Assembly (NCBI GenBank): GCA_029953675.1
Contig: JAMWBK010000009.1
Coordinates: 496,001-560,000, forward strand
DNA: 64,000 bases
Source of the DNA: Rhodosorus marinus CCMP1338
Lineage: Eukaryota; Plantae; Rhodophyta
Reading direction: 5' to 3'
Shown here: piece by piece, positions 21,001 to 43,921 of the stretch
How the letters are laid out: each line of letters opens with the position of its first letter
Numbering within the stretch: position 1 is the stretch's first letter
The notes under the pieces: model-generated
Seen by the model: the letters and a program-made list of their open reading frames with translations, nothing else
Databases searched by the model: none
What the model was told of the DNA's origin: nothing
Translations under genes and position numbers: made by a program

Positions 21001-24000
21001 GCTGTCTCTTTCAGCTTCTGAGACCGAGTATCGGAGGGATCTTCATCTGAACTCTCGTGAAAGCAGTGCGATTCCCGTTGTGGATTGGGACGAAACGTTT
21101 TCCAGGCGCTCGTCGATCGGAGCTGACCCCGGAGATAACCTCGGACCTATTTCTGTACCACGCATTACTCGCCCGGAGACTTTGGATGACGCACCGATCA
21201 GCAAGCTCGAAAATACGCTATGCGATCTACTCAAGAGGACCGACATTGACTCACCGAGCAACAGTCCCATTTTACCTGCGTCCATGCCTACTGTTGTGAG
21301 CGATGGACTGGGAGGCCATGAACTTGCTCGCACTAGCTCGTCTGAGGAGTCGCCAAATCTCTCAGTCAGAGTATCCATATTCTCTGTTGGCATTTCGATT
21401 ATCAGCGGAGAGCCCCAGGAACTGTTGTACATTACGCTTGTGAAAGCGCAGGCGCACTACGCGCTGCTTCAGAGGAGGGAAATAATGGCTCTCAGTGTCG
21501 CAAACGCGCAGATCGATACTCAGCTAAGCAGCAAAAAGTGGCCGGTTCTTCTGCATTTCCCACCAAACGTTGCCCAGTCGTCGACTCCGGTTGTACAGCT
21601 CTCCAGTATCAGGTAGAATCTTACCCCTCGTAAGTGACCACGTTGATTCTATTGACTTATCTGACCGATTGTCTCTCGTTGACGTGTGTGAAATAGGAAT
21701 TTTGCTTCACAGACAGACATATTGAGGTTCCGCGGACTGTTTCTGTCAATTCAGAAGTTTAAGCTCTTTGCTGATGAACACATCGCGTTAAAACTGGTCA
21801 GGGTGTTAGAGGAGTACAGCTCCCAAATCTCAGATGTTCGCTCAAGAGCGAGTTTAGAGTGGGAGCTCATCCACTCTGCGAACGTGACGAGGGTTCAGAT
21901 TGACAAGTTACTGATAAATCCGCTGGACGTGACGCTTTCTTTCTCGACGTCCAGAGCCGTTCCAGTGAGTTAACGTTGAAAAACTTGAGAGCTCGCTCTT
22001 CCAGTGCTGAGCTCGCCTCGTTCTGCTCGCATCACGATGGTGTCTTCAGGTCAAAACATCTCTTCGATACAGGCTCTTGCTGCGGCCGATTGTCTCTGTC
22101 TTCGGAAACGTTGAGAACAACAAGCTCAAGTTTGAATCCATTGACCTGGAGGGAGTTTTTGACACAACATCACATCTCAATACGTTGCTAGTGAAATACT
22201 ATGCGAACTCCTTCGCAAAGCAAAGACTGCGATTCGCTTCGTCCTCTAAGCTCCTTGGTGATCCGGCTGGTCTCTTCGAAACCGTCTCAGCGGAGACTAA
22301 CCACGTGTTCTTCTCGCCTGCGGAAGGGTCTAAGAGTGAAGACTTTTTAGTGAAGGTTGGTGAAGTCTCTGGCGGATTCGCTGCCGGATTTCTGGGCTCG
22401 GTGAAGGGCTTCACTTCTGCGGTATCGGAGGGAGTGAGCGAGCTCACTGACGACGAGTTTTATCGACAGAGAGAGTTAATTCTAAGAGGAAACAATGAAA
22501 TCGTACTTCCCAGCACCGGCTTCTACAGGGGAGCCATGAACCTAGGACACGGTATTCAGAGCGGACTAACAGATCTTGTGGCGGAACCGTGGCAAGGTGC
22601 TATGGAAGGTGGCGTGGGAGGGTACGATTCATTTTGTTTATCTTCGGTCGTCTCCTGGACGGCGTGTAAATGGGCATGCATTGGTTCTCACTATCGTGAA
22701 ATTTTGGTTTCTCACTGTGGCCAGGTTTGCCGAGGGACTAAGCCGCGGGGTCACCAGTGCGATCACGAAACCTCTAGTAGGCGGAATGGACATGATTGCA
22801 CTACCAGTGGCGGGCTATATGAATCTCATCACAGTCCCAGGTCACATAGGCCCCGATCCCAAAGTAATTGCTCCCGTCCGGCCTAGGCGCCTGTTCGCTA
22901 GCAATGGAAACTTGCAGCCGTACAATTGGAGAAAATCCATAGGGCAGGCATTGTTCGAATACGTTAGCTCAGACGCTACGCTGAAGTCCAATGGGTACCT
23001 GGTTGGATGGACGGAACTTTCCGATGACGTAGCTCGCGCAGATACTAACTACCTTGCGAATCTGTGGGGCGTGTTCTCGGGGTAAGCTATGCCCTTTGTC
23101 CCATCCATTTCCGCAGAGGCGTGCTGGGCGTGCGTTCTCACCATAAGTGCTGTTCCGCTTTCCCGTGACCAAGCTTTCTCTACAAAGGGACAAATCCACT
23201 GCAGTCGACTGGAATGAAAGGACTGTGGTACAAAAAGCGACTGGCAATTGTATTGAGCGATGCGTTACTCTTCTTGACGTTCACTGGAGATCGACTGTGG
23301 ACATCGCCCCTCACGGATATTGAAAGCGTTCAGACCTCAGACTACGACCAGAGGAAAGTGTTGATTCGTGTTCCATCCAACCCCAGCCTGTCCGCGGAGG
23401 TCAACTGTGTCTCCAATGAAGCGAGGGAAAATCTGCTACTCTATTTATCAATGGCAGACCGACGGTTTGCGGCTGGAGGAATTAACCCATCACCAGGTGC
23501 ACTAGGTAGGACGGCGCAGCACACTGACGTTCTTGAAACATTTCGAATACGACGTGTTATCTAACTCCATTTTATGATTTTGCAGAAGCTGACGAGGATT
23601 CGGTGGGCTCTTGGGAGGACATGGCTGTTTCTCCAACGTATCCTGACTTATCAATGCAGATTGTCATTGTCAATGAAACCTCGAAAACCTTCAGCCTTGC
23701 AAAGGACATGCTGAGCGAGGGAGAATGGACTGTGGAACCGCCAACTACTGTTAAGTCATGGGATGCGTGTACGTTCGAGGCCAGAAATGTTTCCAAGGAT
23801 ATACGCGGAATGCTTGAATTTGGGAGTGATGGGTAAGCACGACCGCATGAACTTTTTCGGATGGCTTTTCTTTCCTAGTTAATTGAGGTAATCCAATTTC
23901 TCGCTCGTCATTGCGCGGAGTAGCGACAAGGGATCCCTAGTTCTGAGATTTTCGAATAAGTTCCCGCATCCTTGCGAATCTTCACTGGAGGCACCCAGTG

Positions 24001-24218
24001 ACATTGTTCACTCATTCGATCAGGTGGATAGTGAACAGTCACTTATGACGATTATGCTAACAGAACGAAGTTGCGAAGACCGTAGTGCGGAGGTTGTTGA
24101 ACAGCTCCAGTCGATGGGATTTGATCAAGACGTAGCCCAAGACGCCCTCGCGAGGGCTAACGGAGACATTGGTGCTGCCGTGGAGATCCTCACTGCGTTG
24201 AACGTGGCTGAGACCTAG
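12016..24218 (+). CDS. VPS13: VPS13 lipid-transfer protein, many exons, with C-terminal PH, aegerolysin-like and UBA domains
   Basis: Chorein-N start MFESLISDVLERVLGQYVEGITRDKVSVGVWQGALKL; VAB-type repeats (~19.1-20.9 kb); GISIISGEPQELLYITL and QIDTQL (Vps13_C/APT1 region); ATG2_C-like GFAAGFLGSVKGF; PH-like 23214-23505. Introns 23506-23585 and 23833-~23923 extend the frame to TAG at 24216-24218. Confidence 0.9.
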
Positions 24219-25125
24219 GACGAATCAAGATCCGCTTCATTCGTTCGAGGCTTCCAGGACAGCAGGAGCGAACTGGAAAATTTCTCATTAAGCTCCGAAT
24301 TGCTTGTCTGACAATATACAGAAAAGACAAAGCGGGTAGGGTGGAAGAGCTTCTTGGCTAAGAAAACGACCTCGGCAGCAGCAACATCCAGTCAAGAAAA
24401 TAGGTCTGTTTCCCCTGCGAGGGGCTGATCTGTTCGATGAAAGTGCATCCTCTTTTCGTTTTGAGGAAGCGCATTTGTGCTCTTTTAGTCTTGAAGCGTG
24501 CTGGGTCGGATAAGTCCAGCAAGCGCAGTTCATACCCTGATCTCTCGTACGCTACGACTAATTAGAAGTCTGTACAAGCTCAACTCTGAATTTATAAATA
24601 AACAAACGACTGCGATAGTGCTCAACCATGCCGCCTGCATGACCTGCTAAGGCTTGAAGGGCCGCTGGGAAACTCTCGAAGCTCTCCCAGAGGCACCAGA
24701 GACTGCCTCGCACAGGATTGACTCTAGCGTAGGACTCCGTAGATTGGCTACCGAAGCAGCTGCAAGCCCGACGTAGAACCGTACTCTACGGATTTGCAGT
24801 CGGGCAACGAGGACGAGTGAACAGTACCACCCCAGTACGAGTGGACCTGTGCTGCGAACAGTTCTTGGCTTTAAAGCAATCACACATGGTACATGAAAAA
24901 AGCTCCTGATGCACAGGAGAATCGTGATCTGCTCGTCAGACACGCAAATTCCCATAAACGACTTCGAGCTTCCCACGGAATGATTTCATATGCTCACTAG
25001 GTCGATGCATAGGATTCGGCGCACTATTGTTTGGAGGGGCGAGATCAGTAGGAGGAGTTGAAGGGTGCTAAGGCGAGAACTGTATCTACTAGGCGAGTCA
25101 TGCGCTTCGATTCAATGATATCAGA

Positions 25126-26296
25126 ATGGAGGGTCTGATCTATCACGAGCAACAGACCGGGCGTTTATGTGGAGTGCACGTGATAAATTGTCTTCTTCAA
25201 GGAGAGTTTTTCACTGAGATCGAGCTAGGAAACCTTGCTCAGGCGCTTGACTCAGAGGAGCGTGCGTTAATAAGCAACGTTGATGGAGCTCAAGCGACAC
25301 CAACGGAATCAGCAAATGTGTCTACGGACGGAAACTTTAGCATACAAGTACTCTCGCGAGCCTTAAGTAAGTGGTCATTGGACTTGGAACCCGTAGCGAA
25401 AGCTTCCTTGGGAGATGGATCTCTTGTTGCAGAAGCGTATCTATGTCATAGACAGGACCACTGGTTTGCCATAAGGATGATCAATTCGAAATGGTTCGAT
25501 TTGAATAGCTCGAGCGAAGCTCCGCAGCTCATATCGGAGTTCTATCTAAGTGCATACCTCGCTTCGCTCATTGATGAAGGTAAGCAAATTCCCAGCGCCC
25601 CATAGTTCTTCGGAAGCGTTCTGGGTAACGTTCGATAGAACGGTCGATTTAGAGTTCGATGTAACATTCGATGTTTTAACATTCGATGTATATTCGATGT
25701 AACATTCGATGTAACATTCGTTGTAACATTGCGTGTAGCACGATGTAACATTCGGTTGATGTAAATTTCGATGTAACATTCGATGTACATGTAACATTCG
25801 ATGTAACATTCGATGTAACATTCGATGTAACATTGCGTGTAGCACGATGTAACATTCGATAACATTCGATGTACCCCAGTCGATGTAGCATTCGATGTAA
25901 AATTCGTTCTAACATACTTTGTGGCATTGCTAGCACTGGTTGCAACGTTCGTTTGTATAATTGTCTAAGCGTTACGTTTAAAAAAGCTTCTTTTTGAATC
26001 TTCTTGAAATAGGATGTATCATGTTCTCCGTTTCCGGAACTTTCCCAAGCAACGATCCGCTCCGGGGATCGGCCACCTCGTATGGAAAGTGGTGGACGCT
26101 TGAGGCGATCGAAGACGTGAAAAAAAAGGAGGGTCAAATTCGTTCAAAAGATTCCAAGAGGGATGAGGACGAGCAGATCAGAGAGGCGATTTTAAGAAGT
26201 ATGAACGATGGAAACGGGACGAATTTAATGTGTTCAGAAGAGGACCCAGAACTCGCAGCGGCCATTTCAGAGAGCTTGAAAGAGCCACGAGGATGA
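25126..26296 (+). CDS. ATXN3: Ataxin-3-like Josephin deubiquitinase with two UIMs, 2 exons
   Basis: IYHEQQTGRLCGVHVINCLLQG (catalytic Cys), DHWFAIR (His), WFDLNS (Asn). Intron 25580-26012. UIM-like DEDEQIREAILRSM and EEDPELAAAISESLK. Confidence 0.9.
25655..25915. repeat. 12-bp tandem minisatellite (TTCGATGTAACA)n inside the ataxin-3 intron
   Basis: About 20 degenerate units; the variant block CATTGCGTGTAGCACGATGTAA occurs twice. Confidence 0.9.
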
Positions 26297-27322: not shown

Positions 27323-27861
27323 TGAGTTGCGATTGAGGAACGTGAATGAGCCCAAAACCTGAAAACCAGAAAACCAGAACATCAGAAAAAAAAACCGACA
27401 AACAGAAGATGGCATCGCTAACCCCACAACATACAATAGTTAAACGAAGAGCAGCAGTAGGAAACGCCGACACTGTTGCTGATAAAGGCGTTCGGGTTCG
27501 CTTCGGTGGAAACTTCACGGTTACAGGGCTCTTGAATGGGAAGAAGCAACCCCTCCTGGTCGATACCGGAAGTAGCCATTCTGTTCTGCGAGGCATCCCA
27601 GACGCCACTCCAATAATCCCGACTCAACACGGGAGATTGGACACCGCTGCCTCAGGAGCATCAATTGAGATTTTGGGTGAAGCGAACGTAACCTTACAGC
27701 TAGGTGATCACTACTTCGATTGGCAACCCTATATTGTGGAAGAAGCCGCTAGCCCGGGGTACTTAGGGAGAGATTTCCTGCAAAAATACAAAGCGCAGCT
27801 GAATCTACACAACCAGACCCTGACCCTAAACCCAGAAGAACGATCTCCTACATTCGAAAAA

Positions 27862-28020
27862 CCTGAAGAACCTGTAGAACCTGAAAACCCTGAAGAACCT
27901 GAAAACCCTGAAGAACCTGAAAACCCTGAAGAACCTGAAAACCCTGAAGAACCAGAAAACGAACCAGAAATTCAACCAGATGAAAACCCTGAAAATCCTG
28001 AAAATCCTGAAAATCCTGAA
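27862..28020 (+). repeat. 9/18-bp coding repeat (EPENPE)n between protease and RT
   Basis: Tandem CCTGAAAACCCTGAAGAA units, translated PEEPENPEEPEN... Confidence 0.9.
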
Positions 28021-29135
28021 AGATCCAAACGCGCCACTAAGGCGAACGAGTTGGATACCTGGAGTACATCAAGGTATGAATCGGTCTTCGCGGATAATAT
28101 TGAGACACTACCCCCTTGGAGAAAAGTGAATTTCACTATAGACCTGAAACCTGGAACGGAGCCAACTTCTCAACGACCTTACAGAATGAATCTTACGGAC
28201 CAGAAGGAGCTCAAACGACAACTCCAGGAGCTTTTGAACAACAAACTGATTCGGCCCAGTTCGTCGCCTTTTGCAGCCCCGTGCCTGTTCGTTGACAAGA
28301 AGGACGGTGGAAGAAGGCTATGCATTGACTACAGAAGGTTAAACTCCCAGACGATAGCCAACCAGACGAGCCCGCCGCGCATAGATGACTGCCTGGACGC
28401 CCTGGGATCAGCCACATACCTCAGTGTGATTGATCTCCGGAGTGGGTACTGGCAATTGCGGGTGAAGGACGAGGACATACCTAAAACGGCCTTCACCACA
28501 CCATTCGGCTTGTATGAATGGCTGGTGATGCCGTTTGGATTGACCAACGCACCGGCTGTATTTACCCGATTGCTCAACAACATATTCTTCGAAGAATTGA
28601 GTGAATTCGTCACGATTTTCTGTGACGACATCATAATCTACTCTACGAACGCGGAAGACCATAGGAGACACCTGGATACTGTCTTTTCAAAATTGAGAAA
28701 CAACAAATTATATACAAAGCGGTCAAAACGCGTTTTTGGTGTCCCCGAGACAAAATATTTGGGTCACCTCGTTGGAAGTGGGCAACGGAGACCGGACCCG
28801 GGCAAAGTAGCTGCTCTCAAGAATTGGCGAACCCCGGAGAATGTCCATGACGTAAGATCTTTTTTGGGATTTACTGGCTACCTACGCAACTATGTACCGG
28901 AATTCAGCCTTGTAGCAGCACCTTTGACCAATCAAACGAAGGAAAATGTGAACTTCCTATGGGGTCCTGAGCAGCAAGAAGCCTTTGACACCCTGCGGGA
29001 AAAAATGATGGCGCAGCCAGTCCTCCGAAACCCTGACTTCCAAAAAATGTTCATCGTACATACGGACGCGAGCAATCGAGGGCTGTCCTACCACAAAAAT
29101 TTAAAGACGGCGAACATCCAATCGCCTACTTTTCG

Positions 29136-30319
29136 AAGAAATTTTCGGACGCCGAAAAGCGATATTCAACGTATGAGCAGGAGCTTTATGCATTGACAAC
29201 TGCTATTCTCCACTGGCGTACGTACCTGGAGGGGACCAGATTCGTTGTTCGCACGGATCACAACCCATTGAGATTCTTACATTCACAGAAGGAACTTACG
29301 AAGCGGCAAGCCCGATATTTATATCGGTTAATGCCCTTTCAGTTCAATATCAACTATAAACAGGGCAAGGAGAATATTGCGGATGCGCTAAGTCGTCACG
29401 CCATACAACAACTAACAGTCGTTTCAGTTGTACCAAATCCAGAGTGGCGGCAAGCGTACCTGCAGGATCCGGCGTTCAGTGACATCTTCGAGCATCCGGA
29501 GCGATACCGGCAGCAAGGATTTGTTTGGCGAAATGACTCCTTGTATTTGCATAACCGAATCTGTGTTCCGGAAATCATGGTCACCGCTCTCCTCCAAAGT
29601 CACCATAAATGTCCCCCGATGGGTTTACCATAAATGTCCCCCAATGGGTTCACCATAAATGTCCCCCAATGGGTTCATTATGGTGACTTTGGAGGAGAGC
29701 GGTGACCATGATTTCCGGAACACATATTCGGTTATGCAAATACAAGGAGTCATTTCTCTCCTCCAAAGTCACCATAAATGTCCCCCGATGGGTTTACCAT
29801 AAATGTCCCCCAATGGGTTCACCATAAATGTCCCCCAATGGGTTCATTATGGTGACTTTGGAGGAGAGCGGTGACCATGATTTCCGGAACACATATTCGG
29901 TTATGCAAATACAAGGAGTCATTTCGCCAAACAAATCCTTGCTGCCGGTATCGCTCCGGATGCTCGAAGATGTCACTGAACGCCGGATCCTGCAGGTACG
30001 CTTGCCGCCACTCTGGATTTGGTACAACTGAAACGACTGTTAGTTGTTGTATGGCGTGACGACTTAGCGCATCCGCAATATTCTCCTTGCCCTGTTTATA
30101 GTTGATATTGAACTGAAAGGGCATTAACCGATATAAATATCGAGCTTGCCGCTTCGTAAGTTCCTTCTGTGAATGTAAGAATCTCAATGGGTTGTGATCC
30201 GTGCGAACAACGAATCTGGTCCCCTCCAGGTACGTACGCCAGTGGAGAATAGCAGTTGTCAATGCATAAAGCTCCTGCTCATACGTTGAATATCGCTTTT
30301 CGGCGTCCGAAAATTTCTT
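29136..30319. repeat. 473-bp inverted duplication (arms 29136-29608 and 29847-30319) with a complex junction
   Basis: The same RNase H/integrase-N protein is encoded on + (29193-29633) and - (29819-30262). The junction has 25-bp triplicated units and a 169-bp tandem duplication (29587-29755, 29756-29924). Confidence 0.95.
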
Positions 30320-31544
30320 GCAGGATATCGAGAAATTCTTAAGAACCTGCGAAGTTTGCCAGAGGCAAAAAGCACTCCGACACTCAGCGGGAAAGTTGAA
30401 CCCACTGCCTATTCCAGACGGGAAATTTCAATCCGTATCGATGGATTTTATTACTAACCTACCTGTGACACCGGACGGCCTCGACGCAATCTTCGTCATA
30501 GTGGACAGGTTCACAAAATATGCGCAATTCATCCCGACCACAACTAAGGTTACTGCGCGCGAAGCCTCCGAACTATTCCTACGCCATTGGATCCGTTTCG
30601 CAGGGGTGCCAAAAGACATCATCTCGGATCGCAACTCACGTTTCACTGGCATCTTCTGGAACCATCTAATGACGCTCCTGCAGGTAAAACAAAAGCTGAG
30701 TACTGCCTACCATCCACAATCAGACGGACAAACAGAAAGAACGAACCAGACCTTGGAAACGTACCTGCGATGTAATTCAACAACCACAACTTGGGCGGAC
30801 GACCTTCCTACGGCAGAGCTGGCCTACAACTGCCAAGTTTGAGAGTCTACGAAGTTCTCCCCCTTCGAGTTGCTTTACGGAAAGAACCCGATTTTACCTC
30901 CCGATCTTACAGTCCCGGATGCTAACGGCCCTTCATTGTCGTTACCTGAAGCCGCAACCATTATGTTACAACGACAACAAGACCAACAAGGTCTAGCCCG
31001 CGCCAACCTACGATATGCCCAAGAACGCCAACGCTTCTACTATGATCGAGGCAAAAGAGACCTCCACTTTGAACCAGGCGAATATGTGCTCTTGTCAACA
31101 CGGAATCTTCAACTCCCTGATTCAAAAGTTTTTCGGCCAAGATATGTTGGACCGTTTCGAATTTTACGCCAAATTGGTAACGTTGCGTATAAGCTGGAGC
31201 TCACGGGAGATTCTCAGATGCATGATGTTTTTCATGTATCACTATTACGAAAGTTCAATGGACCTGAACCTGAAGGCTCGCGCGTAGTTCCTGTACTACA
31301 ACCAGCAGTACCACAACGAGAGTTGAAGTCAGTTTTGGGACATCGACGAGACGAAAAGAACCTAAAAGATTACTTCGTCTACTTTGAAGGCGAGACAACG
31401 GATTATTTGAGATGGCTACCCTACCATCTACTACCGCAGAACCGGAATACCAAGAAACAAATCCGGTATTATACGAATCTCCACAAGGCAGCTTCTTCTG
31501 CCACCGGATAGTTCTTTCCTTCAGTAGTGTTAGTGTGGTTGAGT

Positions 31545-31793: not shown

Positions 31794-32006
31794 GAGACCT
31801 ACTCAACTTACAACTATGAACCGATCTTGCTCGTTGATGCTGGAAATCATCACGGGCTTGACTTTATCAACTTATCAACTTTATCAACATTCATGACGTC
31901 TCGAACAACTTCAGAAGTTCATCCAAACGTTAGCTCCTTAACTGTATCCAAAAATCGTAAACCGCGGCAAGACGAGGGTGGAAATACATTTCAAACGTTT
32001 CCGAGG

Positions 32007-33776
32007 TCAGCTACTCCACTTCGAAGGCCCCCTCGGAATCCATCTGACGATTGCATCGGGCACAGTCTTATACAATAAGCTTCCCAGCGGCTCGCGCAGG
32101 CCGAGCTTGTACAGCGCCTTTGGAAAGAGGAGAAGCAGCTTTGCGAGCGATGGATTCACGGTTTGCGTGTACGTAGAAGTGATGACACCGTTGACAACGA
32201 TATCACCGGACATCGTGTGCGGATTGTAAACTCCCTTCAGCTGCACCCTATGGACAGCTGTTACTGTGGTTAGATCGCCATTTGCCAGTGAAATCTCGTC
32301 GCCAACCTTCACGTCCTTCGCAGCAACAAGCTTATCGCCGACAACAAGATAGTGATTTGGACTAAGCTCAATGAAGTTCGTGCTCGTTTGAAGCCGCACA
32401 AACTTCCCGAATTCAGTGCTATCTCGGTGGGAGAATCCGAAGACGTCGCTGTACTCGCCGTGGCCCCCGAGGACTGTGTCCCCAGCCTCAAGTCCATCCA
32501 TCGCTTTCGTCGTTCCGTCCTCAAGCGTAACCACTGCATTCCCAGGGAAGCACGCAACCTCCTCCGGGTCCGGGTCGCACTGCTCCATCAGCGTCTCGCT
32601 TACAGACGGAAAATCGTTGATGAGTTGTTGATTGCCGCAGTTTTCAATTATAGGCGAAAGACAGCCCAAGGTGGTTTCCACACCCGCACAGCAGTCATCA
32701 CCCTGGTCGTTCATGACACATGACAAGTCGTTCTCTTCCATGCAAGCAAAGAACGCCTCTCTGTCACATTCATCAGATTCAGCGTACGTTAAGCTGCCCC
32801 CGAAGGTCGCCGCGGTCTCCTCGAGGAATTCAATATGACTGGCAGCTGACAGGGAGTTGTATCCTGACTCGGTTGATGAGTTGCATTCTCCGGTTTCTGA
32901 AAGTCAAAATTGATAATATCCCTGTTCTTAGCCACTCCTCTAGTACGATTCTGTTCTCAAAACTCTTCACAAATACGAACTGAAATGGAATCACTTACCT
33001 GATACGATCCTGACAAAACTCAAAACTCCAACGGAGTACGTCTCATCCAAATTGTCCCCGAGTACCAGTAGAGGACTACCAGAGTCTCCGGAGCAGGTAA
33101 CACCAGCCGTTCCGTCATGATCGCCGTCGGCACACACCAACCTGGAATCCGCGCTGGGCCCCTCCAGGAGATCGCATCCAGTTGCGGTAACAAGGATAGT
33201 GTCCAGCTCGCGCAGCACGATTGGATCCCGGTTATTGTTCGTGCTACCCCAACCAACAGAGGCGGAACTTGTCCAGGTAATTACGGGCAACGTGCTAAGC
33301 ATCAGCACCTTTCCGCCATCATCTAAAAGTGAGCTTGGCATCTTGATCATGCTTAAGTCGAAGCCGAGGACAAGCGTGAGGTTACCATCAACGTACTGCG
33401 GGTGGTTTTCATAGGCTTGGATTGGGCGGCAAGTGGACGAGTCAAATTCAAGACCAAAACATACGTAAAGATCATTCGGGTCCACATCATGAGTGCAGTG
33501 CGCGGCAGTCAGCACCAGGGTCTCATCGACGATAGCACCTGTGCAGAAGAAGAAAATGCCGAAATTCCCGGCGATCCCTATCTGTACCAACCACGGGTAT
33601 TCCGCCATGCTTGTCACTTCATTTCCGTTCACAATCTTCTGCGACGGAGTGAAAAAGTTTTTAATTGACATCTTAGCCGATACATCCTGAACCTGAACCC
33701 CGTCAACCAAGCCACCCAACACTCCAATCAAGGCAAGCAAAATCCCTATCAGGATCCGCTCACGTTCCACCACCAT
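32007..33776 (-). CDS. Secreted S1 (trypsin-family) serine protease fused to a Hedgehog-type Hint (Hog) domain, 2 exons, ~555 aa
   Basis: Exon 1 (33776-32999): signal peptide, QK|IVNG, TAAHC, DLSMI, GDSGSP. Phase-1 intron 32998-32897 (GTAAGT...TTTCAG). Exon 2 (32896-32007) stays in frame through a Cys-rich linker into A|CFPGNAVVTLEDGTTKAMDGLEAGDTVL...SPNH...GVYNPHTMSGDIVVNGVITSTY. Confidence 0.9.
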
Positions 33777-34976
33777 TATCAACACCCCACCCACCCCCCA
33801 ACCCCCAAACCCCTCAAAAACAAAAACCACAGGAAAACTTACAACTCCCTCACCCCCTCACTCCCTCACTCCTTCACTCTCTCCGTCACCTTCAAACACC
33901 TCCCCCTCCGGAATTCCCATCCACCAGACCATTACTAGCACTCCTTAAGTATCCATTCTGAAGATCCACCGCAGAACATGAAACCAACAACTTTTTCACA
34001 AACCCGAACATCCAGTACATAAAACAATCAAAAAACAAGATCTCGAATTCCACTGACAAATATTAGCATACCCCCTTTTCGCGAATGCAAAAGTTCAACC
34101 TGACTTCATTTTCGAACAAATCATTTCTGAAAAATGAAGTGGGTCCACGTCTTACGACGTAGATTTTAAAAGGGGGAGAGGGGGGGGAAGAGGTGAAGGA
34201 AAAGCCTGAACTTATTTATCTGAATGAGAATGGAATGCGTATTCTCATTCATAAATATCCGGTTTTGTTGAATTTATAAATAAAAAAGGATATTTTATTT
34301 GTGAATAGGAATGGAAAATAGGGAAACGGGGTTATCATTCATTATTTTGGTTGTCGGGTTCGGGTTTCTTCGAGGCGGAGGCGAAAGCGGAGGGTGAGAG
34401 GGAAAGTTGTTGGAGGTGGGAGATCTTGTGTGATTCTAGAGGCTCGCCAGTATTTCTTCACTTCAATAAACTAAAAAACCAAGCGGAAAAAACTTCGAGT
34501 GTGTGTGTGTACAGCCCCGACATTTGGATCTGTCCTCTTACTTTCGACCAGTAGACTTTAGATCGTTTTCCTAAACGTGAATGTGGTTGCCTTACCAGTG
34601 AAAAGCAAAAGAATCACGCCTTGGACTTCCAGTCGCGTTTCCATATGATGTTTTTCTTGCTGGTGAAGAGCGGTTTTTGCGGATGTGTCGTATGCTCAAC
34701 AAATTCTGCTGAGAATTGTTGAACCGGACCTTTTGATCTGCAACAAGAGGGACTGCAACTTTTTTGGAGAAAGCATGGGAGAGGAATGTCAAAGTTTGGT
34801 CCATGCATGTTGTGCGACTGAGAAATTTATCTCTCGCTAGCTGCGCGATTACTACAGTCAAGATTTCCGCAGTTATCGCCTCTCGCCGTGAAAGTTCAGA
34901 ACCACGTGGTCTTCGCTCGCATTTCTCCCTGAGCCTAAGAGGCCTGCGGCGACCCTTCCGATGTGGCAAGCAGAGG

Positions 34977-35466: not shown

Positions 35467-36842
35467 TCAGCCCCACTCGCAGTCATCCACTTCGGCCAGG
35501 ACATCACTCATCGCTGCCTGGTTTTCGGGGAGGTCAGCAGTAGCGCGACTTTCTTGTATCCCGACCACAGGCTTTGGTTTGAATGGATACCGAGACGGCT
35601 CGACATCCAGCTTGGTTTCATTTTCTTCGGTACCTGGAATGTTCGATGGAACCATCTCCTCAGGTTCTGCTGTTGCGCGCTCCCTATCTACACTAGCAGG
35701 GACCCTGCAGGGCGCGCTTCCTTCCTGCCTCTCATACCGACTCCACCTGGATGCTGATGGTAGCTCGCGTGCTATCTGCACGTCCGAACTGGGTGCTCCC
35801 TCGTTTGAACTCGTTGAATCGACATCTTCCGATTCTTCCTCATGTTCGTCTCTGCTGAAGTCTCTGGCGCGATTGAGCTTCTGAACAACCGGCCGTATAT
35901 CCTTGGCAGAGTGAGACTGTGCGATAATCTGTACGAAAAATAAAGACCTCCTTGTTCAACAAAACCTTCGTTTTCTTACAAGGTCCTGGGGATCCCATAC
36001 CTTGCGCACAGACTGCTGAATCCCGCAAACTTTGCATACGAATCTTCTGTCCCTTCTAAGCGTACTCGCTTGAAAAGTTCGACAGCTGAAGCATAGTACG
36101 CAAATGTAAAGCATTTCAGCGCACCATCAAGAATATCACCCTACCCTACACCGCATATCGAGCTTATGTCATGCATCCCTCAAAATCACCTCTCAAGCTC
36201 TGCATGCGTCGCACGACAGCTCACCCGCCTGCCGTCTTGTTCAACAAAACCAAAGTTCAACAGTTCGTACAGAGTACATATGATGGTACTAATGAGCGTC
36301 ATCATCACATTTTTCATCTTCCTCGACCGCAAGCTATCTCTGTGGTAAGGGTGTTGGGATTGGAAACTTAAAGGTCGGGCAGGGAACGGGATTTTGTGAA
36401 CAGAACTTTACTTCACTCTTATAGATTCCTAGGGTTTCGGCGCTAGCTCATCCCACAGACAGGGATTTTCCCCAGTTGTGATGGCCGCTCAATGGATGAT
36501 TCCAAGACACCCCAAATTGACTTTTCAACTCGCTGAAATGTCGGCCTGCCACAATCAAGCTTCTGCTTCGGGATCGTCTTCAGATTTCGGCAGGTTGACA
36601 ATACTCCGAAGCTCCTCGCCCGCCCGCTCTGCCTCTTCTGCGAGCGCGTACTTGTCATCCTCAGTGGCCAGCAGGGCAGCCAGGGGTGAATCTCCCCTGC
36701 TCACGAAATTGAGCTGCATGTATCGATCATCAGACATCCTTACAGCCAAGTCAACAAATTCCCCTTCACGCAACACATACCCCTCCGCTCGGGTGATAAC
36801 CAGCAACATGAACACCACCAAAAAACCAGTTCTCCACGCCAT
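35467..36842 (-). CDS. Hypothetical secreted or membrane protein, multi-exon
   Basis: Signal-peptide-like MAWRTGFLVVFMLLVITRAEG at 36842. Plausible GT-AG introns link AVELFKRVRLEG... (~36090-36000) to the acidic C-terminal ORF 35467-35781. No family recognised. Confidence 0.4.
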
Positions 36843-37579
36843 CTTTAGAGGACACCGCGATTTCAGAAAACACTGCCCGCACCCAGCGCAACCTCAGCAT
36901 TCACAGATCCACAGACAGTCCTCCACTCTCACTCGGAGCTTCAGTTGCTGCATACTGCAGCTCCCGATCCATAAATGCGCCAACCCTTCACACCACTATG
37001 AGAAGCAGCGCCGGCCAGTGTGCCAAGAACCCCGACAAAGCGATCCGCATGTTCAAAAGAGAGTAAATTATTTCAAAATTCACATCTGTACAACGGATTC
37101 ATTACTTTCTGTTGTGCAACCTCAACCCCTTTGATCCATCTAAAAACTTCAGATTTTCAGTCAGTCAGGAATCTTTGTGAAAGATTCATCGGCATTATTT
37201 GTTGGACAGCTGTCCACTGCTAGGCTAGATTAGCACGTTCCAAGTGTCAAGTGTCCACTTGGGTATTGACTCAATTTTTCCAGAATTCAAGGTTTGCTCC
37301 TTCCTAATTACTCCCTAATCAAGTAGTTTATCCCAAAACTAACTTTCCCTTTCTAACTCTGGTTCTTCTTCCTTACTTGTTTTCTTCTCTACTAGCTTCA
37401 AGCTAGGCTAACCTCAAAAGCATCGGGGGTTCCATCGTATTTATATCCTTCCGTCATCGGGATATGCGATACCGTCGAGACTAAAATAAGTGTTGTACCT
37501 CCATAGATTCTGGCACAGTCCGAGCATAATTTAGCTCAGCCGCATAGCTCTGTAAGGTTGAACTTGCTTGAAAGGCTGA

Positions 37580-39838
37580 CATGACACATGGTGACAAAAC
37601 AACTGGAGACAAATCTATACCCAGAGTACGAAAAAGAGTACAGATCAGGAATGACTGCAACACAAACTGCAGACAAATCAGAAGCATAAATAGGATTGAT
37701 CATGGGAAACTAGACTATAAATACGGACTCATTCGCATCCAGACCTGGATGAGAGAGAGAAAGGCATCGAAGATAAGAAAACATATAAGAAAAAATAAGG
37801 AATCGAAAAGTGTTTAGGATCAAAGACACCCGTTAACTACGAAGCTGTCGTTTTGGTCTCATCGCATGATGGTAAACCTGAACCCGAATGTCTTCACTAA
37901 TAAAAATCCAGGCCCCGCAGCCGATCTACAAGTGACATCGGATAGGCACGCCGAGCGGGAACGTCTGCAAGGGGAGTTGAAGGAGTTTGAACAGCAAGGT
38001 TTCATATCCCGAAGTCAGAGTCCATTTGCGGCACCAGTACTTTATGCTGGGATGGGGGGCGGCGCCTCTGTATCGACTACCGGCGGTTGAATAGCGTCAC
38101 TACTAGGGAGAGGACAACGCCACCGCGGATGGGCGAGCTGATAGTACTCTGAGCACCGCCCGGGTGTTCACTACGTTAGACTTGAGGTTGGGTTACTGGC
38201 AGCTTCCCATTGATCCGCCATCGAGAGAGAGAGGACAGCCTTCGTTACGTGTTTTGGACAATATCAGTGGAACGTCGTGCCGTTTGGATTTAAAAAAATG
38301 CGCCATCAGCGTTCATTCACTATTTGACGGATGTGTTGTATGACCTCATCAACAAATGCGTGGTGTTATACGTTGATGATATCCTCATCTACTCGGCGAC
38401 TCAGGAGGATCACGAGAGGGATGTCCAACGGGTCTTACGACGACTGGAGCAGCATCGACTGGTCGTCAAATACTCGAAATGCCAGTTCGGAGTACGTGAA
38501 GTTTGCTACCTGGGTCAAATATTGGCGGGAGGCACTCGCCGCCCCGACCCAAGGAAGGTGGGGACTATTCAGCGTTGGAAGGCCCCAACAACTATTAAAG
38601 AATTACGGGCGTTCATGGGATTCGCAAACTTTCCACGACCGTTTGTCCCTCACTTTGCGTCAATCGCTGCACCGCTCCACCCCCTAACGAAGAAAAACAA
38701 GTACTGGTTATGGCATCATGACGAACAGAAAGCGTTCGATACATTGAAAAAGGCGTCAGACACCGCCTTGCTATATATGGCTGATCCCACACTTCCGTTT
38801 ATTATTCAAACGGATGCCAGCGACACAGGAGTTGGGGGTATCCTCTTCCAAAAACAAGGCGACCAGGAGGTTCCAGTGGCATACATGTCGCGATCGTTCA
38901 ATGCAACGGAACTTCGCTACAGCACGTACGAGAAGGAGTTATATGCCATCGTACTGGCAGTACGACAATGGTCAATCTACCTGGATGGGCAACATTTCAC
39001 CGTGCGCACGGATCACAACCCGTTGTCTACGGCGTATCACCCTGAAACGGATGGGCAAACAGAACGCGTCAACCAGACCCTCCAGACTATGCTGAGATGC
39101 TGTTGTACGAGCCACACTTGGGTACAGAGTTTACCCCTGCTTCAACTGGCGTATAATAATCATACTTCAGCGAGTACCGGGTATTCACCATATTTCTTGT
39201 TAACAGGAGGGCACCCGCGGCTCAATTTGGACACCTCAACCCCTACTACTACGATTCATAATCTGGCCGATGCTGCTACTGGTTTCTCGCAACGTCAACA
39301 ACGAATCCTTGCTGACGCACGTAAATCCATGGCCCTGGCGCAGGAGTTGTACACGGAACAGGCAAATTCACGACTTCATGCCAAAATCTTCAATACCCTA
39401 GACATTGTTTATTTGTCAACGTGGAATCTATCCCTGGACGGCCCAACACGCTTTCAACCTCGATGGTTGGGTCCCTTCCCCATTACCGCTAAACATTCCG
39501 ATGTGGTTTATACCCTGCAGTTACCAGATGAGATGCGGATCCATCCAACATTCCACGTCTCATTGTTGAAAAGTGTACCACCTGCTACCACGGCGCCGGT
39601 GGTACACAGTGTACCTATCCAGTCACACCTACCCTCGACACAACCTATCCTCTCGATCTTAAACATGCGGAATACCGATGAGGAGCTTCGGGAATTCCTA
39701 TGCTACCGCGAACAGGAATGCTGGACCGATGCGACCTGGATCGCTGAACCGGACTACCCAACCGATCTCCAATCTCGGCGCCGACTCCGCCATTACCTCA
39801 ACTATCGGAAAGTACTCGATGCTCTGCCTGACGGCTGA
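37580..39838 (+). mobile_element. Degenerate Ty3/Gypsy element of a related family (element 3): LTR-like segment, PBS, RT-RNase H-truncated integrase-chromodomain; left boundary approximate
   Basis: CTATAAATACGGA at 37715 and a diverged LTR-end homolog at ~37810-37850; PBS at 37854; frameshifted RT N-terminus; ORF 38324-39838 with YVDD, TDASD and TDHNPL joined directly to STAYHPETDGQTER. Confidence 0.85.
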
Positions 39839-39922
39839 AGTTGAACACTTCAGTTTGTACCCAAACTCTGCGGGAGGAATGTGGGAACTCCCCGGACAGA
39901 CTGTATTGCTGGTAGTTGTTTC

Positions 39923-41173
39923 TGTTACGTCCTAACCGAACAAGTCAGCCGTCAGGTGTTTGGCCCAAAACAAGGCTAATAATAGATCAGTCTAAATCTA
40001 GTAATAGTACTCTAGCAAACCCAAGACATGAACCGCAAGCCTATAAATACGGAAGTTATGACCTTCCGTCTTAGGATTAGAGCTAGAGGAGAGTATGCAA
40101 GATAGATAAAAGACAACAAAAAGGGAATTTAAAACTATTTTGGATCACCGACACGCGTTAATGGAGAACGTGTCAAGTGGTCTCATCGCAAGAGTTACGA
40201 TTGAGGAACAAGAATGAGCCCAGAACCAGAAAACCTGAAAAACCAGAAAACCAGAAAACCAGAAAACCTGAGAACCTGAAGAACCTGGAAACCTGAAACC
40301 TGAACCCGAATGTCGTCGCTCATTAAGATCCAGGCCCCACAACCGAAAGCCTACGACGGGCGACGTGACGCCTTAATCATAAGTACGTTCTTGAATCACT
40401 TAAGAACGTACTTCAAACTGGCGCGACTACCCGACGACGATGACGACTACCGAATCACCTTGGCAGAAGGCTATCTCACGGGTGACGCCTCCTACTGGTG
40501 GTCACTACTTCCCAACCACCAGAGGCCAACGACATACGAAGGGTTCGAACAAACGCTCAAAGCCCAGTTCTACCCGGCGGACGCCAAGATCCGTGCGAAA
40601 CAGCAACTCGCACAGGCGCAGCAGAGAACGACTGTCTCAGCATATTCGGCATACTTCAATAAATGCCTGATCCAGGTCGGAGAAATCTATCGAACTTTCT
40701 CCGAGAAATCTATCGAACTTCTCCGAGTCCGAGATTTCTCCGACCTGGATCAGGCATTTATTGAAGTATGCCGAATATGCTGAGACAGTCGTTCTCTGCT
40801 GCGCCTGTGCGAGTTGCTGTTTCGCACGGATCTTGGCGTCCGCCGGGTAGAACTGGGCTTTGAGCGTTTGTTCGAACCCTTCGTATGTCGTTGGCCTCTG
40901 GTGGTTGGGAAGTAGTGACCACCAGTAGGAGGCGTCACCCGTGAGATAGCCTTCTGCCAAGGTGATTCGGTAGTCGTCATCGTCGTCTTTCTTTTATCTA
41001 TCTTGGATACCCTTCTCTAGCTCTAATCCTAAGACGGAAGGTCGTAACTTCCGTATTTATAGGCTTCCGGTTCATGTCCTGGGTTTGCTAGAGTACTATT
41101 ATTAGATCTAGACTTATCTATTATTAGCCTTGTTTGGGCTACACTCCCTGACTTGTTCGGTCAGGACGTGACA
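39923..41173. mobile_element. Palindromic (fold-back) derivative of the element-1 LTR family (element 2): LTR>PBS>gag fragment><gag fragment<partial LTR
   Basis: Full LTR 39923-40175 on +, PBS at 40178, gag from 40310, 256-bp perfect inverted arms 40433-40688 and 40732-40987, partial LTR 40988-41173 on -, direct GTTTC at 39918-39922 and 41174-41178. Confidence 0.9.
40310..40688 (+). pseudogene. Ty3/Gypsy gag N-terminal fragment
   Basis: PQPKAYDGRRD...GYLTGDASYWW...TYEGFEQTLKAQF...LAQAQQRTTVSAYSAYF, a retrotransposon gag pattern, truncated at the fold-back. Confidence 0.85.
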
Positions 41174-42454
41174 GTTTCACAATACTTTCATAGTACTTTC
41201 ATTCCCTATTTTTAGATTAAAAAAAAATTTTAGGTTGACGTTTAGCCTCCAACAATTCCTTTTAGGTTGCATCAGGTTATAGTTTACAGGAACCACAAGA
41301 CTGTATAAGACCTAGCTTTGCTAGATCTTGAGACCTAGAATTGAGCAAAGACACGTTGGTTGCAGTAGTTCTAACAGAGATGTCACATAAATCACAGCTG
41401 TCCTTCGTGTAGACAGGCTGTCCCAACTGGCTGGATCGTTGGTGGGGGGAACCTATTTGCAACTGTGCTGCGTCATGTCGGATGCGGTCAAGATCACCAT
41501 AGATCGGTACGCAAAGTGCATTAGTACGAACAGATTCAATCCCCCCGCAACGATTGAGGTTGCGTGACTGCCTGTTCTTGTCTTCGCATCTGATTAGTAC
41601 GGACGGTCCAGGCGGTCATTTGCCGTTGCCGGTAGTTGAAGAGAATGTGGAATTGGCGAATATCAAAGAAGCCTCATAGGGAACGCACTCGAGAGAATGA
41701 TCCATCATGACCGTGATTCCATTCCAACCGGTTGTTGTGGTGGTTAGGCCCACTATGGAGTCGATCGATTTCTTCTGGTTGGGGAGCGGCGCAGCTTGGG
41801 CAGGAAAATCCGATGGCACAATCCCTCTGTTGACCATAAGCTCTTTGTTCTTGTTAGAACATAATGGAATTGCGTAAGTGTTGCTCGACATCAGGTGTCA
41901 GCATAGGAGAGGTATGAATTTTTGGCCATGAGTTCTAGCTGTATAGAGGTTTTTGGCTGCCTGCGCACTAGCCTGTACAATCTATCTTGGTGAACGACTA
42001 CCGATGGATTCGATAGGGCAACAATGAGCATTTTTTGCTTGCAGGTGTTTCTCATAAATTTGCCTTCACCGAGAAACTTTGACACAGTTATTGCCATAGG
42101 CTTCGCCGTGATAGGGAGGTTTGTCGCTCATTTGAGACTCTATTGGTGGTCCGCGGTTAAACCCTGAGTGGGCGGAGGGCAAGGATCCGGCATTCACCGA
42201 AGTCTATACTATGCACCGCGACGCTCACGCAGTCTAGAACGCCTGAAGTTCAGGAATAATCTACGCTTTTGAACTAGTACATGCTAGAGCCCAGTGCATG
42301 CGGCAGCGGAGCCGCGCCAGAACCGTCGGCATGGCGCGGCAAGAGGTACACGAGGACTTTCATGAACATAACAAGGAAGCGGGATACAGTCATGTTCACA
42401 GAATCAGGTTAATTGTTCTTTCATATTTACTTTCCGAGTGGCCGCATCAAATAA

Positions 42455-43040
42455 TTACTCCGCCCCTTCCTCGTCCTGGTCATCTTCCGAAATGTTATAG
42501 TACCGCAGCTCATACTCGTTCTTACCAGTTGCTACTACTCTACACCAATCTCTCAGCGCCTGCTTCTTGAGATACTTCTTCGTAAGATATTTCAAGTATC
42601 TCTTTGAGAATGGAGAGTCCGCAACAACGATAATCTTGTTGTCTTCTCGCTCGATAATCACCGCATCACCAAGCTGCCCTACTTTACCGTTAATCTTTAT
42701 CCTATCGTGCAGGAACTTTTCCTGAACACAGGGGAAGCAAGACATGACCCATGCACATCACTCAGATAAACTGGCGCTGAAGATGCCTTGATCTAACTTC
42801 GACAAACTTACCAAAGACGCAGGCTCCATGAGCTCGTCGCCGACTGGTTCGGTACAGTCGATCGAGAACTTCAACTGCACCTTCTTCCCCTTGGAACCCT
42901 TCTATAAAACATCACGAACACCGAAACAACAGATCGTCAGAACCAGGCCCAAAAATCCACAAGAAAATTTCCCCCAAGAAACCAAGTCAACTCCAGACAA
43001 GGACAAGCCAAAGCTTTCGACACGCCCCACTTACCTTCAT
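42455..43040 (-). CDS. RPL22: 60S ribosomal protein L22e, 3 exons
   Basis: ATG AAG then GTAAGT at 43040-43029; [10 protein letters not shown]; [13 protein letters not shown]; [16 protein letters not shown]...LRDWCRVVA...YELRYYNI. Confidence 0.95.
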
Positions 43041-43921
43041 TACGCGCGACATCCTTCAAGATTCTAAAAACCTGAGAAATAGAAACACCCTGCTTTCCTT
43101 TTTCCCTAAGAAGCCGCCCTCTCTCTTCCCACAACCCCCCGTTCCTGTCTCTACCCACTTCTACTTGCCTCGCAAAATGAAACAACTAGGCAAACAAACC
43201 ATCCCGCCCATCATTTCCATCAAAATTCGTCCCCTAATCCTAACAAAATAGAAAACTTAAAACTTTTGCAGCGGTCCGTCGTCGTCGTCGGGAAAACCAA
43301 ACCCAACACGGGACCCAACCTGCTAATCTAAAAAAACGAAAATAAAATTGGGAGACACGCGTCTATGTTCAATTAGTTTCTTATTACACGTGTATAGTCT
43401 CTGGTCGACAATATAGGACACGTTCTATAATATAAATGGTTAAAAAAATCAGAAGCGAGACTTCATTGGTGTATAGTATAATGTATTTCAATCAAAAAAT
43501 AGCTACCCCCAGAATTTGATCTCTTTCAGCTTTGTGAACATGCAATCGGTAGCTTGCACGTGTCTTTAGTTGATTGTATCAATCAATATGAGATTTTCTT
43601 TTTTCTTCCAGAAATGCGCGGATCGCCTGGCCAGCTCGACCGGCCTGGCTCGATCCGCCTGGCAGTGATTGCGACTGTACTTAGAAGCAGACTCTGAGGC
43701 TTTCTGATCCTATTCTCATCAATCTTGGCACGTTTATATCATGTGAGGATTTTTTGTTGGCGACTATTGCGTCCACTGAGAAATTCCTTCCTTCTCCCGA
43801 GGCCTTGTCATCTTGGTAGATTAGGGTTTTGCTGGTGCTCTGGGGTTGACGGTCCGGGGATCGGGGCGTGGAGGCAAGCTTGGAGCGGTATTGTGGATGC
43901 GGACATATGTCTCAGGGTAGA

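Follow-up and report, generated by a model that had tools for sequence, protein, structure and literature searches.

Two open reading frames (ORFs) on the minus strand of the genome of Rhodosorus marinus CCMP1338 raise the question of whether this red alga makes a secreted serine protease joined to a Hedgehog-type self-processing domain and, if so, what becomes of the protease. They lie in a stretch of 64,000 nucleotides, referred to here as the window (contig JAMWBK010000009.1, positions 496,001 to 560,000; assembly GCA_029953675.1). The organism is unicellular and belongs to the red-algal class Stylonematophyceae (abstract, Nat Commun 2023). Protease and Hog domain (a Hedgehog-type Hint core followed by an adduct recognition region [ARR]) are encoded by one real, spliced, two-exon nuclear gene, a conclusion that leaves us with hardly any doubt. 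The best explanation of the whole, which we regard as probable, is that the product is a secreted zymogen whose Hog domain would cleave its own chain between Ala374 and Cys375 and release the protease, possibly as a sterol ester.

Gene structure and transcript evidence

The initial annotation, made without database searches, had joined the two ORFs through a 102-nt phase-1 intron into a protein of about 555 residues, and this gene model proved correct to the base. The parts of the gene are as follows, in window positions, with (-) denoting the minus strand.

32991-33830 (-): first ORF of the raw map
32007-32741 (-): second ORF of the raw map, with its own ATG at 32741
32999..33776 (-): coding exon 1, starting at the first ATG of the ORF; residues 1-259 and the first base of codon 260
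32897..32998 (-): intron of 102 nt, phase 1, GTAAGT...TTTCAG, with GT at 32998-32997 and AG at 32898-32897
32007..32896 (-): coding exon 2; residues 260-555 and the TGA stop at 32009-32007
31900..32006 (-): 3' untranslated region (UTR), the 107 nt past the stop that fall within the blastn alignment of a transcript-like contig, L002

The start at ATG 33776 is the same as that of the NCBI model NDN08_006607, and the orthologues have a similar beginning. From there, phase-1 joining over the 102-nt intron gives a 555-aa frame that ends at TGA 32009-32007, and retention of the intron would bring a stop two codons on. The spliced product is identical (100%, full length) to "hypothetical protein NDN08_006607 [Rhodosorus marinus]" of assembly GCA_029953675.1, which is encoded on a contig of 1.83 Mb. 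Orthologues from R. marinus transcriptomes (MMETSP) are of equal length, share 83-84% identity with it, and carry both domains within a single ORF. Contig L002, which comes from a related strain and has an uninterrupted ORF within its 1969 bp, gives blastn matches to window positions 33769-33010 and 32897-31900. Between these matches, 10 nt are unaligned in L002 versus 112 nt in the window, and thus exactly 102 nt are absent from the transcript. The second segment (32897-31900) shows an identity of ~85% over its whole length, 3' UTR included, so that the 3' UTR is conserved too.

The raw map, with its two ORFs and a separate ATG (32741) for the second, could also be read as an annotation artifact in which neighboring protease and Hog genes were merged by a predicted intron. 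The colinearity of L002 minus exactly the intron and the single ORF of the MMETSP transcripts argue against this. The position of the intron does so as well: it falls within the protease domain, chymotrypsin homology continues over the junction, and a conserved cysteine (Cys264, the Cys220 equivalent) and the C-terminal helix of the protease fold (SAASHIEFLEETAA) are encoded 3' of it, so that exon 1 alone would be unable to give a complete fold. Furthermore, the second ORF alone has no signal peptide, and the fusion is repeated in at least 23 proteins. The artifact is therefore effectively refuted by transcript and orthologue evidence, and we rejected it as barely conceivable. A pseudogene reading was also considered and rejected. 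Directly upstream of the start codon (window 33777-33900 [-]) lies a G-rich tract with repeated GTGAGGGAG and GGGGTTGGGG motifs.

The secreted protease

The N-terminal half of the protein comprises the following features.

33699..33776 (-): probable signal peptide, residues 1-26, MVVERERILIGILLALIGVLGGLVDG; cleavage position judged by eye
33636..33698 (-): propeptide, residues 27-47, without Cys, ending in Lys47 before Ile48-Val-Asn-Gly
32805..33635 (-): S1 (chymotrypsin-fold) protease domain, residues 48-290, split by the intron
33498..33500 (-): catalytic His93 (chymotrypsin His57), in TAAHC
33357..33359 (-): catalytic Asp140 (chymotrypsin Asp102), in FDLSM; invariant in the 24-sequence family alignment
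33081..33083 (-): catalytic Ser232 (chymotrypsin Ser195), in GDSGSP
32883..32885 (-): Cys264 (chymotrypsin Cys220; partner of Cys191, which is Cys228 here), in exon 2; an invariant column

Judged by its profile, triad, cysteine positions, fold, and activation site, the N-terminal half is a member of peptidase family S1. Pfam Trypsin (PF00089) covers residues 49-257 with an E value of 1e-22 (81.4 bits versus a cutoff of 20.6), and the best phmmer matches of the protease in the PDB are kallikrein-4 and chymotrypsin (E, 1e-12 to 1e-13). The His/Asp/Ser triad reported in the initial annotation is indeed complete, as alignment to chymotrypsin places His93, Asp140, and Ser232 at the catalytic positions. 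Three cysteine pairs (78/94, 201/215, and 228/264) occupy the 42-58, 168-182, and 191-220 disulfide positions, the bonds being predicted from the alignment; four of these six Cys columns are invariant in the family and two nearly so. An AlphaFold2 (AF2) model, built on the alignment of 24 family sequences, has a mean predicted local distance difference test score (pLDDT) of 83.7, with values mostly of 85-98 over residues 50-290. When the protease part was compared by Foldseek, many S1 proteases were matched at target template modeling (TM) scores of 0.80-0.85, about 0.83, including prostasin (3FVF) and DESC1 (2OQ5).

The secretory N terminus and the propeptide, both proposed in the same annotation, are supported as well. 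Residues 8-24 form the sole strongly hydrophobic stretch of the protein, and a hydrophobic N-terminal stretch is present in all 24 family members. Residues 23-46 are predicted to be disordered (pLDDT < 50 in the AF2 model). They are followed by a zymogen-type site, Lys47/Ile48-Val-Asn-Gly, which has the classical form of an activation site and would give an Ile16-type N terminus. A site of the form R/K-I/V-x-x-G occurs in 21 of the 23 family members in which the N terminus is present, and the other two have His and Arg-Gly. Position 189 of the S1 pocket is not an Asp (GVTCSGDSG), whereas relatives from Porphyridium and Gracilaria have the trypsin-type sequence DSCQGDSGGP. Thus, trypsin-like specificity, i.e., cutting after Lys or Arg, is unlikely for this protein, and another protease probably performs the cleavage after Lys47.

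The Hog domain and its possible reaction

The part of the protein that follows the protease domain is divided as follows.

32559..32789 (-): 8-Cys all-helical module, residues 296-372, C-x7-C-x7-C-x8-CC-x8-C-x7-C-x19-C
32160..32552 (-): Hint core, residues 375-505
32550..32552 (-): Cys375, nucleophile at the predicted scissile bond between Ala374 and Cys375 (ACFPG); aligns with Hedgehog C258/C1
32427..32429 (-): His416 of "FSHRD," at the Hedgehog general-base position D46/D303
32352..32363 (-): Ser438-Pro-Asn-His441, the TxxH block (Hedgehog T69/H72)
32172..32174 (-): Thr501, at the Hedgehog C143/C400 position; "STY" (residues 500-502) replaces "SCY"
32010..32159 (-): ARR, residues 506-555; its first helix, SLAKLLLLFPKALY, is homologous to helix 1 of the Hedgehog sterol recognition region (SRR)

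The Hedgehog-type Pfam model PF01079 matches residues 373-521 with an E value of 1e-24 (87.6 bits versus a cutoff of 29.7), while intein-type Hint models (Hom_end_hint) reach only 0.03. The solved structures matched by sequence are Hedgehog proteins only (6TYY, 6TD6, 1AT0, and 7E2I). When a profile built from 147 related Hog domains was compared with Drosophila HhC by hhalign, it aligned with residues 1-167 (probability, 99.5%; E, 3e-22). These matches, together with the alignment of Cys375, bear out the earlier identification of a Hedgehog-type Hint domain with a Cys at the junction, and the spliced translation places the Cys codon at 32552-32550, as had been stated. With the full model as the Foldseek query, the top 50 matches were all S1 proteases and none had the Hog fold; the Hog identification therefore rests on sequence and profile evidence.

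Numbering relative to Hedgehog was taken from the alignment to Drosophila HhC (1AT0) and 6TYY, and conservation of the active site was counted over 148 related Hog domains. Cys1 is a Cys in 147 of them, position 69 is Thr (81) or Ser (66) in 147, and position 72 is His, again in 147; the SPNH sequence had thus been correctly taken as the TxxH block, with Ser438 and His441 at T69 and H72. The PHTMSGDIVVNG motif named in the initial annotation is likewise found in the Hint part of the spliced protein. The Asp of "SDV," which had been put forward as the Hedgehog Asp, has to be given up, as the general-base position is occupied by His416 of "FSHRD." A His at position 46 is found in 139 of the 148 domains. 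Position 143 is Thr in 120, Cys in 12, and Ser in 6 (138 together). Relative to the orthologue, the ratio of nonsynonymous to synonymous substitution rates (dN/dS), a rough figure from one orthologue pair, is 0.28 for the protease, 0.22 for the Hint core, and 0.18 for the ARR, and all parts are under purifying selection. Active-site conservation and purifying selection fit a working Hog enzyme.

Work on Hedgehog itself indicates what these residues might do. The H329A protein is dead and T326A is greatly reduced in activity; D303A retains cleavage by dithiothreitol and loses cholesterol transfer, while D303H retains structure, pKa, activity, and sterol transfer and has a wider sterol tolerance (PMC9163320). 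The top PDB match of the Hint part, 6TYY, is the engineered D46H mutant, with the same His as His416. Since that mutant is active, general-base function may persist in this protein. A branched thioester is formed on C143 of Hedgehog, and the C143A and C143D mutants have no activity (PMC12054796). Replacement of the motif-J Cys in red-algal and moss Hog domains was already seen by Burglin in 2008 (PMC2362128).

The hydroxyl or thiol at position 143 is also a point of likeness to inteins and BIL domains, as are the Hint fold, the N-terminal Cys nucleophile, and the TxxH block. Inteins use Thr, Ser, or Cys as the +1 nucleophile, and a branched ester at this position is therefore chemically plausible. 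Unlike inteins, the protein has no C-extein and ends ~50 residues past the Hint core, and its best Pfam model is the Hedgehog-type Hint. A reading as an intein or BIL domain was rejected, the domain being terminal and no intein Pfam model scoring above threshold.

The region between the protease and the Hint core had been called a Cys-rich linker. Cys-rich it is, but it appears to be a conserved and folded 8-Cys module rather than a linker: it is predicted to form a helical bundle, with pLDDT values of 77-93 in the full AF2 model and 78 when the module is modeled alone, and its dN/dS value (0.11 versus the orthologue) is the lowest of the whole gene. The cysteine pattern recurs in Rhodosorus paralogues. 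In one of these (P0007), the module occurs twice in tandem (residues about 330-490); in another (P0010), it is placed behind a long Ser/Thr/Pro-rich stretch. By this recurrence in sequence, it is a mobile module. No Pfam match was found for it and no PDB sequence match at E values up to 10, and its best Foldseek matches had E values of >1 (designed helical bundles, the RGMB N-domain, and MIT domains). Identity as a lipid transfer protein or saposin was rejected because evidence was lacking, and it is treated as an unclassified helical module. Cleavage would leave the module joined to the protease, and any adduct would thus be carried by it.

At the other end of the Hint core, the alignment to HhC reaches residue 167 (SLAHWGLAPMRLLSTLE) of 211 and covers the first SRR helix, with SLAHWGLAPMRLLSTLE against SLAKLLLLFPKALYKLG. 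Motif K (SLAKLLLLFPKALY) aligns with SLAHWGLAPMRLL, and the equivalent of motif J is S-T-Y. The initial annotation had placed a helix, LAKLLLLFPKALY, where Hedgehog has its SRR. The placement holds by hhalign, but the region as a whole, with its 50 residues, is only partly Hedgehog-like. The AF2 model predicts ARR helices at residues 508-514 and 516-523 and further short ones at 533-536 and 540-545. Near-invariant residues of the ARR are Pro508, Ala511, and Leu515.

Taken as a whole, the protein shares several features with the Hedgehog precursor of animals: it is predicted to be secreted, it has a C-terminal PF01079 Hint domain with Cys-Phe-Pro at the cleavage site, and it has the TxxH block, a "G.IVVN" block, and a first SRR helix that follows the pattern "SLAH..LAP.RLL." Sonic hedgehog has GCFPG at its cleavage site. 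It differs from Hedgehog in its cargo, which is an S1 protease (Pfam Trypsin) with a Cys-rich module and not the Hedge signaling domain, in having His for the Asp general base, Thr for C143, and Ala instead of Gly at position -1, in its shorter ARR, and in the lack of a Hedgehog pathway context in a unicellular red alga. Lacking the Hedge domain, Asp46, Cys143, and a full SRR, the protein is, by its sequence, not a bona fide Hedgehog. In all features compared, it fits the broader family of Hog-domain proteins that Burglin defined in 2008 (PMC2362128): the Hog domain is C-terminal, Cys is its first residue (motif A), there is no C-extein, and motifs B, J, and K are present. Hog proteins of red algae, mosses, and protists, the nematode warthog, groundhog, and quahog proteins, choanoflagellate Hoglet, and Glomus GIN1 likewise have Hog at the C terminus behind unrelated secreted N termini, and the red-algal members have motifs J and K with Ser, Thr, or Asp for the motif-J Cys (PMC2362128), as is the case here.

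On the favored explanation, the precursor would enter the secretory pathway, where Cys375 would attack the Ala374 carbonyl in an N-to-S acyl shift assisted by Ser438 and His441, giving a thioester. The acyl group may then move to Thr501 as an ester, and a nucleophile activated by His416 would resolve the thioester or ester, which would separate the Hog domain from the protease and Cys module (residues about 27-374). Self-cleavage of this kind, argued by analogy with Hedgehog, is quite probable. As the nucleophile, we favor the 3-beta-OH of a membrane sterol, which the amphipathic ARR helices would hold; by the same analogy, a sterol adduct is a possibility that we would not yet call probable. 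In that case the protease would end in a sterol ester on Ala374 and stay at the outer face of the cell membrane, with a self-installed anchor and an outcome like that of a glycosylphosphatidylinositol (GPI)-anchored protease. The zymogen would be switched on by cleavage after Lys47, probably through another protease.

Sterols of a suitable kind appear to be available. In Rhodosorus sp. CS-210, 24-methylcholesta-5,22E-dien-3-beta-ol made up 71.8% of sterols (Dunstan 2005, as tabulated in PMC12256458), and this C28 sterol does carry the 3-beta-OH that the reaction requires. The initial annotation had invoked cholesterol-type sterols, but the main sterol of the strain in that table is not cholesterol.

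Several observations weigh against the explanation as a whole. The 17-residue hydrophobic core at the N terminus could be a signal anchor instead of a cleaved signal peptide. As the propeptide has no Cys, activation at Lys47 would detach the enzyme even from an uncleaved N-terminal anchor, and a C-terminal lipid would therefore be the only tether. The ARR has ~50 aa compared with ~65-70 in Hedgehog, a second SRR helix with the HWY motif (motif L) is not recognizable in it, the hhalign alignment ending after helix 1, and the family-conserved His and Arg of helix 1 are Lys and Lys in this protein. Thr501 sits at C143, where the Ala and Asp substitutions abolish Hedgehog processing (PMC12054796). 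The sterol reported to predominate in a Rhodosorus strain is a C28 sterol and not cholesterol, and the expression evidence comes from related strains (83-84% identity) and not from the exact allele of the sequenced strain. No biochemical study of any non-animal Hog domain was found in the literature.

The main rival to this explanation is that the Hog domain cleaves itself but the thioester is resolved by water or a nonsterol nucleophile, which would leave a protease that is soluble or has another adduct. The Hog domain would then be a module for maturation, sorting, quality control, or temporary inhibition and not a lipid-anchoring device. The shortness of the ARR, with the first helix alone aligned to the SRR, and the Thr in place of C143 fit this alternative. 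So does the term ARR itself, which Burglin coined because the adduct outside Hedgehog was not known (PMC2362128), and so does the finding that SRR helix 1 doubles as a Golgi localization motif in Sonic hedgehog (PMC9163320). Against it stand the purifying selection on the ARR, with its near-invariant Pro508, Ala511, and Leu515, and the retention of His at the general base in 139 of 148 domains. Because Hedgehog can form the thioester and be cleaved by dithiothreitol without that residue and needs it only for sterol attack (PMC9163320), its conservation suggests that an activated nucleophile, and not plain hydrolysis, has been under selection. We regard resolution without a sterol as possible but clearly short of probable.

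It is very unlikely that the Hog domain is catalytically inactive and remains attached as a C-terminal binding or structural domain. The two catalytic departures from Hedgehog, D46 to His and C143 to Thr, and the block of Hedgehog processing by C143A and C143D (PMC12054796) would be consistent with such a loss, but Cys1, the Ser and His of the TxxH block, and His46 are all retained and are nearly invariant over the 148 relatives, and D46H Hedgehog is active (PMC9163320). The alternation of position 143 among the three residues used as intein nucleophiles also argues against inactivity. Under the favored explanation, the closest functional analogy is to GPI-anchored prostasin and testisin and to the type II transmembrane serine proteases of animals, which are also extracellular chymotrypsin-fold zymogens with an activation site of the form R/K followed by IVxG and are held at the surface, as this protein putatively would be. 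The tether here would be a Hog-installed sterol ester and not the product of GPI transamidase or a transmembrane helix, and the likeness in the anchoring part is without shared ancestry.

Trypsin-Hog proteins in red algae and the surroundings of the gene

Word-indexed homologue searches were either flooded by trypsins or nearly empty, and the family emerged only when phmmer was run exhaustively against 1.84 billion cluster representatives. This search gave 150 matches with E values of <1e-30, of which 149 contain a Hog domain. In the protein set analyzed, 24 members have both trypsin and Hog; of the 146 nearest Hog proteins scanned with Pfam, 23 were confirmed to contain Trypsin. The fusion is found in several diverged R. 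marinus paralogues (e.g., NDN08_004234 and MMETSP transcripts), in Porphyridium purpureum (KAA8498291.1, named "Transmembrane protease serine 9"), in one protein each of Porphyridium aerugineum and Compsopogon caeruleus, and in Gracilaria domingensis (KAI0558698.1, named "Trypsin"). Its recurrence over the Rhodosorus paralogues, Porphyridium, Compsopogon, and Gracilaria indicates that it has been maintained. We take the named hosts to span at least four red-algal classes. In a neighbor-joining tree of 147 Hog domains, the Trypsin-Hog proteins were not grouped as one clade, but the tree, based on 175 columns and without bootstrap, cannot tell a single ancient origin of the fusion from multiple origins.

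Among the 146 nearest Hog proteins, the majority of which have no recognizable cargo domain, trypsin is the cargo identified most often. Other cargoes are fasciclin (four proteins) and Kelch (two), and Spondin_N, a PHM/DBH-like copper monooxygenase, pectinacetylesterase, and pentapeptide repeats occur once each. The copper type II monooxygenase, in a JGI contig protein of 728 aa (P0004), is a second example of an enzyme as Hog cargo. Two Trypsin-Hog proteins, P0006 (an MMETSP transcript) and P0146, have broken triads, with Leu or Ser for His57 and Val or Asn for Ser195. Both keep the Hog Cys1; His46 is kept in P0146, whereas positions 46 and 143 are Lys and Cys in P0006. Judged by these residues, both proteins appear to have a pseudo-protease as cargo and to be processed nonetheless.

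The architecture is therefore not unique, as it is present in the public protein sets of several red algae under generic names. The EST (expressed sequence tag)-based survey of Burglin in 2008 reported red-algal Hog N termini without a known domain and listed only GIN1 and Hoglet with distinct N-terminal domains (PMC2362128); the protein described here differs from those red-algal Hogs in having a recognizable enzyme as cargo. A full-text literature search found no published description of a protease-Hog fusion, an absence that is not proof, as most subscription journals were outside its scope. As a described entity, i.e., an enzyme cargo on a Hog domain with a natural His46/Thr143 site, kept across Rhodophyta, it appears to be new. 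The novelty claimed in the initial annotation is thus reduced by at least 23 diverged Trypsin-Hog proteins and kept insofar as these bear generic names and no paper on them was found. That annotation had also allowed that many annotated Trypsin-Hint proteins would speak against novelty, and this holds in part, the fusion being widespread but generically named. Overall, its interpretation was for the most part correct and went too far in three respects, the Asp, cholesterol, and uniqueness.

To our knowledge, the Hedgehog ligands of animals are the only proteins for which covalent sterylation has been demonstrated by experiment. The chemistry of protist, algal, and moss Hog domains and the ancestral role of Hog are questions that date from at least 2008. 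This gene offers a simple test of Hedgehog-style lipid tagging beyond animals: with a well-understood enzyme as the cargo, cleavage, adduct mass, membrane partitioning, and protease activity provide simple readouts. The family also supplies natural variants at two Hedgehog residues under active study, with His in place of the Asp general base and Thr in place of Cys143. In red algae, it suggests that generic names at present conceal a conserved class of extracellular proteases that are tethered to the surface or self-processed.

A broader proposal, that red algae use Hog domains generally to esterify secreted proteins, enzymes included, to membrane sterols, seems unlikely to us at present. If it were true, this protease would provide the first known case of a sterol-anchored enzyme, and protein sterylation would be an ancient eukaryotic means of membrane anchoring, older than Hedgehog signaling and not an invention of animals. 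The His46/Thr143 site would then show that the Hedgehog reaction can proceed via an oxy-ester branched intermediate, as in inteins with Ser or Thr at position +1.

A tblastn search of the 64-kb window found no second trypsin or Hog gene. The annotated neighbors encode VPS13, Josephin, MRNIP, and ribosomal L22e and lie at window positions 22007-26296 and 35467-43052; these are unrelated housekeeping genes, and there is thus no gene cluster. Decayed pieces of Ty3/gypsy-type retroelements are found on either side of the gene (window 27346-31511 [+] and 38324-39838 [+]), and both are absent from the called-gene list of the locus. The first, directly 3' of the gene, comprises an ORF for aspartyl protease, reverse transcriptase (RT), and RNase H (27346-29196 [+]) and a sequence for a Tf2-type integrase SH3 domain (30870-31511 [+]). 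The second, upstream of the gene, is another RT/RNase H/integrase remnant (38324-39838 [+]). Farther away, at window positions 49812-50846 (-), a 344-aa ORF has a subthreshold Pfam match to "Decapeptide repeat" (34 bits versus a cutoff of 45) and is overlapped by an ORF on the opposite strand (49861-50817).

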